Origin: Macrostomum lignano
Taxonomy: Eukaryota
Direction: 5' to 3'
Assembly: GCA_002269645.1 (NCBI GenBank)
Contig: NIVC01000980.1
Location: forward strand, 372,001-436,000
DNA length: 64,000 nt
The first letter of the stretch is position 1. Each line of letters opens with the position of its first letter. Both the position numbers and the translations under genes were made by a program. The notes beneath the pieces were generated by a model. That model ran no database searches. It was not told the DNA's origin and saw only the letters and a list, made by a program, of their open reading frames with translations. Positions 13,298 through 63,995 of this stretch are shown in pieces.

Positions 13298-13462
13298 TCA
13301 GGCCACAGCCTCCGCCGCATTGGGCCCGGCCTCATCGTCGTACTCAACCGACGGGTTGCTCTTTAGAAAATGGGCCAGCTGGTTATTGGATAGGCTGGAG
13401 TTCATCGACCGGCGATCCATATCAGAGTCAAGCCCCATCCTGAAAGCGTTCACAACGCGAAC
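13298..13462 (-). CDS. PMCA: PMCA alternative terminal exon (short tail, VRVVNAFRMGLD...)
   Basis: CCCCCTCTCTCTCTCTAG|GTT acceptor in phase 0. VRVVNAFR matches IRVVNAFR of b-type PMCAs. 54 codons then TGA. Confidence 0.87.
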   Translation of the reverse strand, partial: VRVVNAFRMGLDSDMDRRSMNSSLSNNQLAHFLKSNPSVEYDDEAGPNAAEAVA

Positions 13463-15829: not shown

Positions 15830-16294
15830 TCACACAGCGGGCGGGTCCTCCTCAACGATGGAGGCGCCGCCGGCGCTGGCTCCCGCGCCGAGCTGCAGGT
15901 GGCCGGAGCCGCCTAGCGGGCCAACCCAGTCGATGGAGTGGCTCTTGCCGCCAACTTGTGCGTGCGCGCGAAACACCCCCCCACTGGCAGCCCCGGCAAC
16001 GACGGCACTGGCGGAGCTGCCACCAGCCACTGCGGTCACCCTGCCGACTCCGTCTAAGCCGCCGACGCTGGAATCGGGCAGCGCGGAGGCCGATTCGGCG
16101 TCCTCGGCAGGGTGACCGGCGCCGCCGCTGCCGCAGGCGACGGCATCGTCAGCGGAGGCAAAGCGGGTCATGGGCCTGGGGTGGGTGTTCGACCGGCGGT
16201 AGAGCAGCATCTGGCGCTGCCGGCGCAGCTCAATGAAATCCTTGCGATCCTCCAAGTCCTCCAGGGTGCTTTTGAAGGCGCGGACGACGCGCAG
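15830..16294 (-). CDS. PMCA: PMCA alternative terminal exon (long tail, LRVVRAFKSTLEDLEDR...)
   Basis: ACGCAG|CTG acceptor in phase 0. Completes the CaM-binding motif QTQ-LRVVRAF. 154 codons then TGA. Confidence 0.85.
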   Translation of the reverse strand: MRVVRAFKSTLEDLEDRKDFIELRRQRQMLLYRRSNTHPRPMTRFASADDAVACGSGGAGHPAEDAESASALPDSSVGGLDGVGRVTAVAGGSSASAVVAGAASGGVFRAHAQVGGKSHSIDWVGPLGGSGHLQLGAGASAGGASIVEEDPPAV

Positions 16295-17656: not shown

Positions 17657-17665
17657 CGTTTGCAT
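17657..17665 (-). CDS. PMCA: PMCA candidate 9-nt microexon (MQT) at splice site C
   Basis: Minus strand reads CTCCTTCCCTCCCTTTTTATTCCTGCAG|ATGCAAACG|GTAAGT. Long pyrimidine tract, consensus donor, phase 0 to 0. Confidence 0.62.
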
Positions 17666-19328
17666 CTGCAGGAATAAAAAGGGAGGGAAGGAGACAGTGG
17701 AGCGGGAGGTACGGTAGGCAATAACGGAGCCATTGGTGAGAATTATACTATTCATTTAAGGGAACACATATTGGAAAAATAAATCCGGAAGAGTAAACTT
17801 AACTTGAACTATAGTAAGTCGGCTAAACTATATTTAAGCGAATTTTATTTAGCTTACTTTGAATTACCTTTCTAAGTTGAAAGTATGACAAAATAATAGA
17901 TCTTACTTTCCATAGTATAAATAAGAGTAAATAAAAAAATAATACAGATAGAAAATAATCATATTAATTCAGATAAATTTTTCGAATCGAAAAAAATATA
18001 TAGATGGGGTTGATTATATGTAGAAATAAATTTAACTTGTAATCTAAATATAGTTATTTACAAAATATTTTGTTCGCGATTATAAACCGGATATCGATTA
18101 AATCGTTTACAAAAATATTGTTGCCAATATTAGCAGACCAATCGATAACTATTCAAATAATGGCCAACGTGTTTCAGAAAATTTATTTTAAAAGCACTCT
18201 GCATCTCTACATTCATTATTCTAAACCTAAATGGTGCTTTTTTTCCAGTAAAACAACAAAAATGTCAATTAAATGTTTTAATTTATACGCTTTCATTGCC
18301 GCCACAAATTCACGTCTGCTATATTTAGCTGGTAGAACGAAAAAGAAACGATATTTTCAAACACGAATAGTTTGTTAAATTAAAATTTTGCGTGCGTTTG
18401 TTTTTAGCGCTCGATAGTAAAACGCGCAAAAATCGATAGAAACACGCGTAGAATTTCGCTATTTGACAGTTTCTAATGATCGTTAATTATTAAAATACAA
18501 TAATGTAGTTCGTATAGAGATGCCAGTATATGCGTAAACAAAATAACGTACTGTAGATATAAAGTAGTGCTTTGGACAGTAATAGTAGTTCAAGATGAAG
18601 CGAGACGAGATGACAGCGTTGCTTGTTTTACAATAAGGATAAAAATAATTTTTATCTTTAAAAAAGATTTTCGATAAACTTTACACCGAAAATCAAAAGT
18701 TACGGTGCAGATTTTTTAAGTAGCTCCAACGCCTTTCTTTGTTCCATTAGTTATTTTTTATGTTAGAACTACGAGCGTATATAGACACTACAAGCAATGG
18801 TAAAATTTCAGTAAATATTGAAACCACAAATAGAAGGAAGCAGCCTATATAGCTAATCAAGCGACAACACCGTATATAGTCGAGGTGGCAGGCTTGGGTT
18901 AAACTAAAGCGGTTGAGCGTGTATTTTTAGTATTTATGTTCTGTCAGGATGGGAGAGTAAAACACGACTTGAATTAGAGACTATAACAGAACTAAGGATA
19001 TAATCGATATAAATATGACACAGTATAAATAATGATAAACAAGCAATGGGCGTAATATACGAGCTAGTAGTGATGCTAACTGTACGTATTTGATAAACAA
19101 AGCATGCTAAAATTGTTTATTGATTTTGTTAGTTTGAACAAAACATGATTAACTATATAAGCTACACACGTCGCTATAAGCTTTTAGGTAGCCGCTGGGC
19201 CGAACTCGATGAGTTTTAAGAGTTGTTTCTTGACTCTCAGTTATCTTTCTTTTGTAGCTCCTCTTCTTCCGACTCATTTAATGGCTGCTGATCTTGCTTT
19301 TCCTGCTGCTGCTGCTGTCCGCGGCTGC

Positions 19329-19469
19329 TCAGCAGCCTGTCGCTGCTATTGGAACTCGGAGGCCCAGCCGCCTGCCGACTCCAACTATGGTCATTCGGCG
19401 CTCTTCGATCTTGCGCAGAGCCGACACCATCCAGGGATCGATTGAGCGCAACTCGTCTGCCCGTCGGCG
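19329..19469 (-). CDS. Candidate additional PMCA alternative terminal exon
   Basis: GC-rich island in AT-rich intron. CTGTACAG| acceptor. Phase-0 frame RRRADELRSIDPWMVSALRKIEERRMTIVG..TGC-stop. AATAAA on the minus strand at 19116-19121. Confidence 0.4.
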   Translation of the reverse strand, partial: RRRADELRSIDPWMVSALRKIEERRMTIVGVGRRLGLRVPIAATGC

Positions 19470-32508: not shown

Positions 32509-33042
32509 CTCCCAGGTACACCTGAACGGCAGTCATCCTGTTAGTAGTCAAAGTGCCAGTCTTGTCTGAACAGATTGCTGTAGCATTGCCCATGGTCTCG
32601 CAGGCGTCCAGATGCCGCACCAAGTTGTTGTCCTTCATCATCTTCTTGACTGAGTAAGCCAGAGAGAGGGTGACAGCCAGCGGCAAGCCTTCGGGCACGG
32701 CGACCACGATCACGGTGACGGAGATGATGACGAAGTCGATAAACTTCTGCAGGTCGCGGGTGAAGTTAAACTCCAGGCCGGCTCCGGTTGGCGGCTGGGC
32801 GAAGGTCAGCACGCAGTACTTGATGATGAGGACAAGGAAGGTCACAGCGCCGATCAGCGAGCCGACGTTGCCTATCCGGATGGCCAAGCTGGTGAGCTTG
32901 GCCTGCAGGATGCTCTTCTCCTTGCTTGACGAGTACTTTTTCTTCTTCTCTTCGTCGTCCACGTGATTGGTGGCGCCGTCGCCCCCGGCTGGCGAGGAAC
33001 CGGCGGCGCCGCTCACAGCAGTCAGCTGTACAGCTTCGGGAT
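32509..33042 (-). CDS. PMCA: PMCA coding exon 5
   Basis: [65 protein letters not shown] (TM3-4 and phosphorylated Asp). GGCAG|AT acceptor, G|GTGAGT donor. Confidence 0.96.
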
Positions 33043-33071
33043 CTGCCGTGGGCAGGGATTGGCGAGTTGTA

Positions 33072-33210
33072 AGCACCTGGGACAGGTAATTGTGTCAGCA
33101 CCTGGGACAGGTAACTGTGTCAGCACCTGGGACAGGTAACTGTGTCAGCACCTGGGACAGGTAACTGTGTCAGCACCTGGGACAGGTAACTGTGTCAGCA
33201 CCTGGGACAG
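33072..33210. repeat. 25-bp repeat, about 6 copies
   Basis: Unit AGCACCTGGGACAGGTAACTGTGTC. Confidence 0.93.
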
Positions 33211-34404
33211 ATTGCTTTATAAATAAACCGATAAGCAAACACTTCAAGCATATATTCGAAGGCACAGTTTGCTAGGAAATGGCGGAACAAAACTATACCA
33301 GAGCTCGTGCAAAAAGCATTAAAATTTTCAGAAGATCACTCAGTACACTTCAAATCGATATAGTGTTGAAAATTTCTCTGTGTCCGCTGCTAATTCACGT
33401 CTAGAAATCATTTAAATAGAATTGTAAATAATACACAGCAGGAATAACAAGCTACTTTAAGTAGCTTTACTGCTGTTTTAGTCGGAGAAAACACAAAGAT
33501 GTTTCACGCTTCAACAATATAAATTATTCTAGTTGGAGATTTAGCCGCGCCTCAGTCAGACCTGAGCTGAGAACTAATATTGAGCACAGGGAAGGGGGGG
33601 TGAGCTGCATGCGTTCGAGGCGTTAGTTGAAGAGCAGACAAACTTATGCTTGGGTCCGGGAGGGGGGAAAATTCCCGTGTGGGGATATTTTTAGCCAGCG
33701 GATCGGTAATTAATTCGGCATCAGAATTAAGGGATAACAAAAACTGCATGCTGGGGGGGGGGTGTTCAGCCTGAGACGCCGGAAAAAAGATTCAGAAGAG
33801 AGAGAGGGGAACGGAGGAGGCAGAGCCAACGAAGAAGGTGTGCGTGCAGTCGGTAGAAAATTAATCCCTCGACTCATTCCAGGGCAACCAGGCTTTGCTG
33901 CCGCATGGGCTGGCAGGTTGCGATGGGGGGAGGGGGAGAATTCGCATGGGATTTCTAGCCCACTGCCTGGCCAAATAGGCCATGAGGAAAATGTTCGGCC
34001 AGCAAGGCTTGAGCTTGTTCCGTTTTCCCATCCCGTCAGGGCCATTCTCGACGCATAATATTGCGCCAAAATCATTATTTCCCTTTCATTTGGCTACTCA
34101 ACTCAGCTGCCAATGCCGGGGGTGGGGGCGACAGAGCAGACAAAGCTGTCGAGAATAGGATTAAATCCCCGCTGCTGCCTTGCCCCATCCTAAATCCCCG
34201 AGCACACTCGAATGAATCAGCTGCTGCTAGTTGGGCCAAAATCTTCTCAAGTAATTTGCCTTGATTTGACTTTGGCAGGAATCTGGGCCTCCGCTTGGCT
34301 GTGCTGCATCTATTGCCTATGGGTACCTCATTTATTGCCCACAGGCCAATAAGCTGCTTCTGAAACCAATTCTGCGCATTGCGGATTGATGTTGGAATTG
34401 TTAT

Positions 34405-35530
34405 TTCTGTGCCATGTCTGTGTCTGTGTCTGTGCCTGTGTCTGTGCCATGTCTGTATCTGTATCTGTGCCATGTCTGTGTCTGTGTCTGTGCCTGTGTC
34501 TGTGCCATGTCTGTATCTGTATCTGTGCCATGTCTGTGTCTGTGTCTGTGTCTGTGTCTGTGCCATGTCTGTATCTGTATCTGTGCCATGTCTGTGTCTG
34601 TGTCTGTGCCTGTGTCTGTGCCATGTCTGTATCTGTATCTGTGCCATGTCTGTGTCTGTGTCTGTGTCTGTGTCTGTGCCATGTCTGTATCTGTATCTGT
34701 GCCATGTCTGTGTCTGTGTCTGTGCCTGTGTCTGTGCCATGGTGTATCTGTGTCTGTGTCATGTCTGTGTCTGTGTCTGTGCCTGTGTCTGTGCCATGTC
34801 TGTATCTGTGTCTGTGCCTGTATCTGTGCCATGTCTGTGTCTGTGTCTGTGTCTGTGCCTGTGTCTGTGCCATGTCTGTGTCTGTGTCTGTGCCATGTCT
34901 GTGTCTGTGTCTGTGTCTGTGCCATGTCTGTGTCTGTGTCTGTGCCATGTCTGTGTCTGTGTCTGTGTCTGTGCCATGTCTGTGTCTGTGTCTGTGCCAT
35001 GTCTGTGTCTGTGTCTGTGTCATGTCTGTGTCTGTGTCTGTGTCTGTGCCATGTCTGTGTCTTTGTCTGTGTCTGCGCTAGTGTCTGTGTCTGTGTCTGT
35101 TTATGTGTCTTTTTCTGTGTATTTTCCTGTAATTTGACGGTCTGTGCCTGTATGCTGATGGTCTGTACCTGTATGTTGATGGTCTGTACCTGTATGTTGA
35201 TAGTCTGTACCTGTATGTTGATGGTCTGTACCTGTATGTTGATGGTCTGTACCTGTATGTTGATGGTCTGTGCCTGTAATTTGACGGTCTGTGCCTGTAT
35301 GCTGATGGTCTGTACCTGTATGTTGATGGTCTGTGCCTGTAATTTGACGGTCTGTGCCTGTATGCTGATGGTCTGTGCCTGTATGCTGATGGTCTGTGCC
35401 TGTATGCTGATGGTCTGTGCCTGTATGCTGATGGTCTGTGCCTGTATGCTGATGGTCTGTGCCTGTATGCTGATGGTCTGTGCATGTATGCTGATGGTCT
35501 GTGCCTGTATGCTGATGGTCTGTGCCTGTC
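34405..35530. repeat. Compound satellite: (TCTGTG)n/TGCCA mosaic (34405-35100), then a 21-bp array (35135-35530)
   Basis: Second unit is TGTATGCTGATGGTCTGTGCC. Confidence 0.93.
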
Positions 35531-36055
35531 TATCCTAGCCAAATTCCTTGCAGGCATGTCCTGTGCTTGCCCCTCAATACTTTACTGCGTCTTTCAACTC
35601 AAAGCCAGCTCAAATAATAGCTAGTGCTCACTACGAGCTACATCTAGATAATTCTAAAAAATGCTTTCCTTCCGTCCTTCTCTCTCTACTCCATCCATCC
35701 TCTTAATCCCCATTAGCTTTTTATCCCTATCAGCTGGGATGCAGCCTCTCTCAGCCTTATCCGCCCTGTCACAAAGAGTCAAAACCATAGCATTGAGTAG
35801 CGGCTAGTGTTTCCCTATACAAAGCCCCGGGGGGAGCGACCCCGTGATTATGATTAGTTATAGCATGGCAAAAAAAGTGAAGCACAAGCCTTTTTTAAGA
35901 TGCGATCAATCGGGACTCGATAAAAATAGGCGGAACTGCAGCCGCTTCCTACACCTTCGTACTAATTATGGATGTTCAACTAAAATAAAACTATATATTA
36001 TTGACTGATTAGGCAGCCTGGCGGATTGCGGACAACTCTACCAGGCTCTACTCAC

Positions 36056-36073
36056 GCGGCGCACTTTGCTCGG
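36056..36073 (-). CDS. PMCA: PMCA candidate 18-nt microexon at splice site A (adds about AEQSAP)
   Basis: Minus strand reads CATTTCTGCTTCTATTCCAG|CCGAGCAAAGTGCGCCGC|GTGAGT. Frame-preserving, stop-free in phase 1, located in the first cytosolic loop. Confidence 0.6.
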
Positions 36074-36490: not shown

Positions 36491-36667
36491 CGTTCGGCTT
36501 GTCGTTAGCGGATCTTTTCTGCGCCTGCGCCGGTGCCGGCTTGTCGTCGCCGTCAGCGCCTTCGGCCTCGCCGGTGGCGCCGAGCAGGCTGAAGATGATG
36601 CCAGCCTGGGAGTTGATGCCGACAGCTGTCACTATCATTCGGCCGGAGCCTTCCATCACGTTGGTGC
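36491..36667 (-). CDS. PMCA: PMCA coding exon 4
   Basis: [34 protein letters not shown]|GC acceptor, G|GTACGC donor. Confidence 0.93.
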
Positions 36668-62880: not shown

Positions 62881-63483
62881 CTAGTAATCAGTAATTTTTG
62901 AAAATTCTGAGCCCATATTGAGTTCACAGTTTCTAATTAGTCGGCTTCTACTTATGCTACCATTAGTAGTACTAGTGGTAGTTGACGCAAGGTTGCCCCC
63001 TAAGGATTGGCCGGATCCGCTGAATGCAACAAATCCTTTGGAGAGCTGTTGCTGTTGCTGCTTCTGCTCCGCGTCAGTGGCGGCAGCAGGAGCAAGTAAA
63101 CGACGATGCTGCGGGTAGTTCAGTGTGCCCCAGTTATAATTAAAGTTAGGACGGCCGCGCTCATGAACAGCTGTGGCGCCTGTTGCTGTACTGCCGTCGC
63201 GTCTGATATCCACTGTGGAAACCGTGGAACCCGAGATTGAGCCTTCCGAATGTTCTGTCCCCTGTTCGGCATTCACTAGGCTCTCGACCTCATCGGAGGA
63301 CTCATCCGAAGGCGTTTCAGAGACATCAAATTCAACTGCCAGATCGCAGTCAATGATGCAGACAGAGGAAGCCGGGCGAACATCGACAACGCTGAGACGG
63401 TAGCGTCGGCCGTTCAGCTTCAAGTCGATCTCGTCACCAATGCTGAGGCAGATGAAATCGCGAAGGCGATTCTCCAGAACAGC
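62881..63483 (-). CDS. UFD1: Ubiquitin fusion degradation protein 1, terminal exon (gene continues beyond the window)
   Basis: CCAG|AVLENRLRDFICLSIGDEI..VCIIDCDLAVEFD matches UFD1 (AVLENALRNFACLTTGD..IIECDMNVDFD). C-terminal SHP box FVAFSGSGQSLG. TAG stop. Confidence 0.9.
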   Translation of the reverse strand, partial: AVLENRLRDFICLSIGDEIDLKLNGRRYRLSVVDVRPASSVCIIDCDLAVEFDVSETPSDESSDEVESLVNAEQGTEHSEGSISGSTVSTVDIRRDGSTATGATAVHERGRPNFNYNWGTLNYPQHRRLLAPAAATDAEQKQQQQQLSKGFVAFSGSGQSLGGNLASTTTSTTNGSISRSRLIRNCELNMGSEFSKITDY

Positions 63484-63489
63484 CTGGTT

Positions 63490-63995
63490 GGAGTGATAAT
63501 CATGGGGAGGAGGGGCGGATTGGAGTGATAATCGTGGGGAGGAGGGGCGGATTGGAGTGATAATTATGGGGAGGAGGGGCGGATTGGAGTGATAATCATG
63601 TGGAGGAGGGGCGGATTGGAGTGATAATTATGTGTAGGAGGGGCGGATTGGAGTGATAATTATGTGTAGGAGGGGCGGATTGGAGTGATAATCATGTGGA
63701 GGAGGGGCAGATTGGAGTGATAATCATGTGGAGGAGGGGCGGATTGGAGTGATAATTATGGGGAGGAGGGGCGGATTGGAGTGATAATTATGGGGAGGAG
63801 GGGCGGATTGGAGTGATAATTATGGGGAGGAGGGGCGGATTGGAGTGATAATTATGGGGAGGAGGGGCGGATTGGAGTGATAATTATGGGGAGGAGGGGC
63901 GGATTGGAGTGATAATTATGGGGAGGAGGGGCGGATTGGAGTGATAATCATGAGGAGGGTGGATTAGAGTGATAATAATGGGCAGGAGGGACGGA
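63490..63995. repeat. 32-bp G-rich minisatellite, about 15 copies
   Basis: Unit GGAGTGATAATTATGGGGAGGAGGGGCGGATT, abutting the UFD1 acceptor. Confidence 0.94.

Follow-up and report, generated by a model that had tools for sequence, protein, structure and literature searches.

The plasma-membrane Ca2+-ATPase gene (PMCA/ATP2B) Mlig025778g2 of the flatworm Macrostomum lignano contains a genuine 18-nt microexon, already annotated, in the intron that separates its exons 4 and 5. Taken as a whole, the evidence assembled below makes it very probable that this segment is a bona fide PMCA microexon, the flatworm copy of a spiralian site-A module, with a modest tuning effect on the linker that it enters. 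Splice signals did not suffice for this assignment, which draws on transcript-derived annotation, on a paralogous gene within the same genome and on the gene structures of other phyla.

The PMCA locus and its 18-nt exon

The gene lies on the minus strand of the window, the 64,000-nt stretch of contig NIVC01000980.1 analysed here, and was rebuilt from open reading frames, a rough tblastn guide and splice sites, giving 13 core coding exons followed by alternative 3′ exons. Its assignment to the PMCA family follows from homologues that are 59–62% identical over 95–100% of the length and carry PF00690, PF00122, PF00702, PF00689 and PF12424, from a match of the loop segment to human PMCA1 (6a69; E = 3.8e-82, phmmer against solved structures) and from the DKTGTLT motif in exon 5. 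A full-length query returned a best match of 99% identity and three paralog groups at 75–78% identity; it was used in place of a 243-aa protein query, which had matched proteins of at most 424 aa and no close relative. The features of the locus, in gene order, are:

46794-46638, minus strand: exon 1, with the ATG
41224-41051, minus strand: exon 2
40282-39896, minus strand: exon 3
36667-36491, minus strand: exon 4, ending in phase 1 with donor gtacgc, within a coding sequence identical to PAA74051.1
36074..36490, minus strand: upstream intron, 417 nt, its last 20 nt being catttctgcttctattccag
36056..36073, minus strand: 18-nt microexon, CCGAGCAAAGTGCGCCGC, entered and left in phase 1, encoding (A)EQSAP(H)
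36050..36055, minus strand: microexon donor GTGAGT, read from the sequence
33043..36049, minus strand: remainder of the intron downstream, with about 1.1 kb of minisatellite (34406-35120, 35135-35529)
33042-32509, minus strand: exon 5, starting (D/H)PEAVQLTAV..., with the basic region, TM3–TM4 and the CSDKTGTLT phosphorylation motif
31899-31790, minus strand: exon 6
31256-30801, minus strand: exon 7
30167-29925, minus strand: exon 8
29266-28880, minus strand: exon 9
28245-28032, minus strand: exon 10
27925-27723, minus strand: exon 11
27549-27442, minus strand: exon 12
26677-26486, minus strand: exon 13, ending ..LQTQ
17657..17665, minus strand: 9-nt site-C microexon, ATGCAAACG (MQT), donor gtaagt, within PAA74051.1
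13298-13462, minus strand: last exon used in PAA74051.1, VRVVNAFRMG..

The site-C microexon is preceded by the acceptor ..ttattcctgcag (longer form ..ctttttattcctgcag). Three alternative 3′-terminal coding regions follow ..LQTQ on the minus strand, at 19240-19469, 15833-16294 and 13298-13462. The first, RRRADELRS.. (19469-), is used by the gene copy L003 (PAA59731.1) and shows in the window copy an apparent frame shift after ..IVGVG relative to that protein, while LRVVRAFKST.. (16294-) is absent from all retrieved models. Further upstream, an open frame on the minus strand that contains ..NRLRDFICLSIGDEIDLKLNGRRYRLSVVDVRPASSVCIIDCDLAVEFD.. (62884-63627) resembles an exon of a UFD1-type ubiquitin-fusion-degradation protein, in which case such a gene would neighbour the PMCA gene on its upstream side.

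Exon 4 ends at 36491 with ..AAG CCG AAC G/gtacgc (slashes mark exon boundaries), in phase 1, and exon 5 starts at 33042 with cacggcag/AT CCC GAA GCT GTA. Within the 3.4-kb intron between them, the minus strand reads ...catttctgcttctattCCAG, then CCGAGCAAAGTGCGCCGC (36073-36056), then GTGAGT, or, in longer context, ...gcccgacatttctgcttctattccag, the microexon CCGAGCAAAGTGCGCCGC and gtgagtagag.... Pyrimidines make up 75% of the last 20 nt of the upstream intron, a UGC begins 14 nt upstream of the microexon, and the AG-free zone before it measures 27 nt. When the microexon is skipped, the split codon is G/AT, that is Asp, and the peptide runs KPN-D-PEAV; when it is included, G/CC GAG CAA AGT GCG CCG C/AT encodes AEQSAPH without a stop, giving KPN-AEQSAPH-PEAV, so that a single Asp is replaced by seven residues for a net gain of six. 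The first-pass annotation had placed the microexon, its pyrimidine tract with CCAG and its GTGAGT donor at these positions in the intron between exons 4 and 5, all of which are present in the sequence, and translation reproduced the stop-free peptide change that it had given.

The same intron holds a minisatellite at 34406-35529, which takes up about 1.1 kb of its 3.4 kb and whose periods are 6/23/58 nt and 21 nt; similar arrays occur in many other introns of the window, and L003 and L004, though near-identical copies of the gene, differ in array length. A second minisatellite, with a 25-nt unit (33068-33210, 5.7 copies, 98% match), stops 26 nt short of the exon 5 acceptor. In gene orientation, each of its units has cccag/gtgctgac, an AG/GT pair with a CTGAC branch-point-like motif, placed before the real acceptor.

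Splice signals and an open frame do not exceed chance in this intron. It contains 144 in-frame, stop-free AG...GT segments of 3–63 nt, and a small position weight matrix (PWM) trained on the gene's own 14 acceptors and 13 donors ranked the microexon second among these candidates, behind a 12-nt decoy. The decoy (35643-35632, minus strand; ATGTAGCTCGTA, acceptor cattttttagaattatctag, donor gtgagc) is likewise in-frame; it occurs in no gene model, and no evidence of its conservation was found. Because the PWM cannot separate the microexon from this decoy, splice signals were rejected as sufficient evidence and, being at chance level, they made independent evidence necessary, from annotation, from the paralog and from other phyla. 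The number of candidates and the higher-scoring decoy are what speak for a chance pseudo-exon, whether an unused frame-preserving AG..GT segment or an artefact of transcript assembly. That explanation is nevertheless scarcely credible against the three lines of evidence laid out below: independent transcript-based models of three gene copies all include the exon, a paralog whose introns are otherwise unalignable has an 18-nt phase-1 counterpart, and a brachiopod and a bivalve share the architecture.

Transcript-derived models and paralogous genes

From exon 4 to exon 5, all 4159 nt compared match NIVC01000980.1 of GCA_002269645.1 without a difference (100% identity), and the exon model with the 18-nt exon, the 9-nt exon and the last exon 13462-13298 translates identically to PAA74051.1 (1177 aa). 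Behind the GenBank annotation stand RNA-seq (STAR, StringTie, TACO), a de novo transcriptome and TransDecoder rather than ab initio prediction (PMC5730564). Since the annotation behind PAA74051.1 is RNA-seq-derived, transcripts support the microexon, which already stands in a public annotation, the evidence of its inclusion being transcript-derived annotation rather than reads; the exon thus stands in a coding sequence of transcript origin as a frame-preserving (3n) unit of 18 nt. The same protein of this locus carries both AEQSAPH and MQT, which bears out the earlier proposal of microexons at both hotspots, A and C.

The members of the 90%-identity cluster fall into two forms. The included form, ..DKPN-AEQSAPH-PEAVQ.., is found in GenBank PAA59731.1, PAA74051.1 and PAA56555.1, which are the three RNA-seq-based models, among those for copies of this gene, that reach across site A. 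The skipped form, ..DKPN-D-PEAVQ.., appears only in UniRef A0A1I8GKK0, A0A1I8GHF3 and A0A1I8HFK8, older models whose provenance was not established. PMC5704211 and PMC10733133 describe M. lignano as a recent polyploid, which accounts for the 98–100% identical copies L003 and L004. The copy L003 keeps 98% identity even in the intron and is therefore uninformative on selective constraint.

More informative is the second paralog group (L001 and L002; Mlig032505/Mlig009734), 78% identical to the window gene. There, exon 4 ends ..ACG GCT G/gtaagg, and a first microexon lies about 1 kb downstream of it: ..ctaactgtcaaacatttcctttccacccatctgcag, then GTGAACAGAAGACGCCGC and the donor gtgagt, 18 nt in phase 1, encoding GEQKTP(H). 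The peptides GEQKTPH and AEQSAPH share four of seven residues. Among the nine in-frame 18-nt candidates in the 6.4-kb intron of this paralog, the annotated one is the only one to share at least three of seven residues, the rest sharing at most two. A blastn-short comparison of the two introns found nothing in common beyond the 12-mer CGCCGC/GTGAGT (E = 1.2), and nucleotide identity between the two microexons is 11/18, as against 0.59 at four-fold sites in exon 3; as 11/18 is not above the four-fold identity, the conservation argument rests on length, phase, position and peptide.

This paralog group has a second microexon, TTCTGAATCCGGATGCCAAGAGACCTG, of 27 nt, encoding (L)LNPDAKRP (L001 16750-16776, L002 16164-16190). 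Its DNA is identical in L001 and L002, and it is included only in the L002 protein (P0249) and skipped in that of L001 (P0123). It looks like a true alternative cassette and, as far as gene models go, directly attests alternative use at site A within the family. A search of the window intron for a homologue of this 27-nt microexon found no convincing one; the best candidate for a second microexon there, 35915-35886 (LPIDRILKKA), was set aside for its weak donor, gtgctt. The intron of the third paralog group (L005) is in phase 1 as well (..GCG AAC G/gtgagg ... cag/CC GCC GAG), and no microexon candidate in it passed the pyrimidine and donor filter.

For the window microexon itself, alternative use is plausible: most whole-animal transcripts of the gene would carry it, and a minority would probably lack it. 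The count of at least eight combinatorial isoforms in the first-pass annotation is to be read as a proposal. The competing reading, that the exon is constitutive and the skipped models are gene-prediction misses, so that this gene has no alternative splicing at site A, is a real possibility, though less likely than not. A constitutive exon accords with inclusion in three of three RNA-seq-based GenBank models spanning the site, with the frequency at which gene predictors miss microexons, and with the ends of the three skipped UniRef models, which read through into the site-C intron (..LQTQVRCCSITVMCLYLPLI) and suggest imperfect models. Against it, a UniRef model of paralog group 2, A0A1I8GWH9, which is not a GenBank PAA entry, holds that paralog's 18-nt exon (AGEQKTPH), so that the pipeline could catch microexons if this model shares its source with the skipped ones. 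Site A is, moreover, used alternatively in the 27-nt exon of the paralog, in a 21-nt exon of the brachiopod Lingula and in 36-nt cassettes of insects, the last two of which we describe below.

Site A in other phyla and in vertebrates

Two further spiralian genes show two small exons in the same intron:

Lingula anatina (L007): exon 4 ends ..GAT CAA G/gtatg; first microexon 21 nt, GAPHNVP; second microexon 27 nt, (V/L)LSGDDQKS; exon 5 opens AC GTA GAA
Mactra antiquata (L009): exon 4 ends ..AAT GCA G/gtatt; first microexon 30 nt, GTKESGPNQP+T; second microexon 24 nt, VLSDADRV; exon 5 opens CC CCA GAA

The 21-nt exon of Lingula is present in one annotated protein (P0126) and absent from another (P0173), whose locus (L006) starts downstream of site A and is of no use for site-A structure. 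N-terminal PMCA exons and the 27-nt microexon are present in duplicate in L007 (17230-17310 and 23629-23709; 27514 and 29634), and the model P0126 (1503 aa) fuses the duplicates, which stem either from the assembly or from a genuine tandem duplication. In Mactra, the 30-nt segment (L009 28956-28985, CM103824.1; donor gtgagt) lies inside a 14-kb site-A intron and is missing from the annotated protein; it agrees with GTKGAGPTQPL, an insert seen in a related bivalve-like protein (P0205), and we take it for a probable microexon that the annotation lacks.

All species checked have G as the last base of exon 4, in phase 1, and flatworm, brachiopod and bivalve have in common a first microexon that ends with Pro plus C/T and a second that starts (V/L)L. 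Among these genes, the codon following the first microexon is Leu or His, and Val or Asp when the exon is skipped; exon 5 opens with two nucleotides that finish a D/H/A codon, followed by (P/A/V)E. The window gene differs in showing the first microexon only, and the first-microexon peptides differ as well, AEQSAP in the window against GEQKTP, GAPHNVP and GTKESGPNQP; similarity to the peptides of other phyla comes down to the terminal Pro and the following Leu. Conservation of the window exon shows in the 18-nt phase-1 exon of the paralog and in the microexon layout of Lingula and Mactra.

Insects and mites have, at the same point, a cassette equivalent to 36 nt (EAKKQRKKKSLT and similar) that is in or out among RefSeq isoforms. 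In the same loop, it follows directly on the ..KKMKK with which the corresponding exon closes; it keeps the reading frame and is alternative within one species, for example Anabrus simplex X1 versus X2. Unlike the neutral to acidic window exon, this cassette is strongly basic, and at 36 nt it is longer; it is known by isoform comparison only.

We therefore picture the window microexon as the likely flatworm copy of an old spiralian site-A module. Such a module would consist of an exon 4 ending in G, a first microexon of 18–30 nt ending in a Pro codon plus C/T, often a second microexon of 24–27 nt encoding (V/L)L(S/N)xD.., and then exon 5, with all junctions in phase 1; its intron would have the same phase as, and a position similar to, the intron of the vertebrate site-A cassettes.

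Within the protein, the insert falls between the A-domain motif GIIFSLLGA and a basic stretch, in the first cytosolic loop (TM2–TM3), as had been proposed for it, close to the lipid-binding region: the basic stretch downstream of the microexon corresponds to the acidic-phospholipid-binding region. The microexon lies about 45 residues upstream of that stretch, in a poorly conserved linker, and a phmmer alignment with human PMCA1 (6a69) places AEQSAPH directly upstream of AKAQDGAAMEMQ. Partial vertebrate models start with (A)KKQDGAVAMEMQ, in the exon after site A; a primate ATP2B3-like contig has this exon opening ..gtgtgcag/CT AAG AAG CAG GAT GGC, in phase 1 as in the spiralian genes, and in the comparison with this locus the distance to KEKS(V/I)LQ is similar, 35 versus 44 residues, across a linker too divergent for codon-exact mapping. 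Loop position and intron phase agree with vertebrate site A; codon-exact orthology cannot be shown because of the divergence of the linker.

Site A of vertebrate ATP2B1–4 resembles that of M. lignano in its short 3n exons in the TM2–TM3 loop, upstream of the phospholipid-binding basic region, in a downstream exon entered in phase 1 (primate cag/CT AAG AAG CAG GAT GGC; M. lignano G/AT CCC GAA) and in the ability of one intron to hold several small exons. PMCA2 has three of them (PMC5641333); Lingula, Mactra and the paralog of M. lignano have two each. The w/x/y/z inserts of PMCA2 amount to 45, 14, 31 or 0 residues, so that the window microexon, with 18 nt and a net six residues, is far shorter, and vertebrate site-A inserts have no recognisable sequence similarity to it. 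The comparison supports the same intron phase and a similar position, and the cassettes themselves are at most putative orthologues.

Function, regulation and comparative meaning

According to PMC5641333 and PMC6987452, a site-A insert must exceed 30 residues to bring about apical targeting. With a net gain of six, the window microexon is, on length alone, unlikely to act in membrane targeting. By analogy with the vertebrate inserts, its inclusion or skipping would alter the length and charge of the linker before the lipid-binding segment, as modest regulatory tuning rather than as a large targeting insert, and among readings of its function, such a modest influence on the linker beside that segment is the most plausible.

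We regard it as unlikely that the exon belongs to a neural, Srrm234/eMIC-dependent programme and is co-regulated with the 9-nt exon at site C. Features given for eMIC exons include a UGC shortly before the acceptor, an extended zone free of AG and a strong branch site (bioRxiv 10.1101/2021.02.24.432780). The M. lignano exons resemble eMIC/SRRM3/4 (Srrm234) microexons in size class (at most 27 nt), in the proximity of a UGC to the acceptor and in a pyrimidine-rich tract: the exon lengths of 18 and 9 nt fit, each of the four PMCA microexons examined in M. lignano has a UGC among the 15 nt before its 3′ splice site together with a pyrimidine-rich tract, the exon of the paralog adds a CTAAC branch site and an AG-free zone of 44 nt, and both microexons occur together in PAA74051.1. 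A UGC near the acceptor is, however, also present at six of 14 other exons of the same gene (p = 0.07), so that the cis features of the window exon are not distinctive within its gene, and its AG-free zone is just 27 nt, without a CTRAY branch site. Its presence in the dominant whole-animal models would, moreover, be unexpected for a strictly neuron-restricted exon unless the gene itself is neural.

As the microexon is already in the GenBank coding sequence (PAA74051.1), the locus needs no re-annotation, and at the level of the locus our result is mostly confirmatory. Its wider value is comparative. In the papers found, invertebrate site A is treated only as an "insert" relative to human PMCA2z (including PMC5641333 and PMC6987452), and our literature search found no paper on flatworm site-A microexons or on their shared architecture across Spiralia; relative to that literature, the window microexon is a new, undescribed member of the known class of PMCA site-A exons. 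Comparison between species also reveals unannotated microexons, such as the 30-nt exon of Mactra.

What appears to be the same phase-1 intron, with one or two tiny, frame-preserving exons, recurs in flatworm, brachiopod, bivalve and vertebrate genes and, by isoform comparison only, in insects. In its most far-reaching form, the two-microexon site-A module would be ancestral, at least to spiralians and possibly to bilaterians, with the vertebrate w/x/z exons descended from it and with flatworm co-regulation of sites A and C by neural Srrm234/eMIC; we give this full scenario little credence. M. lignano is amenable to transgenesis and RNAi and could serve to test the effect of a small site-A insert. 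Together, these comparisons suggest that PMCA site A is an old alternative-splicing hotspot rather than a vertebrate invention.
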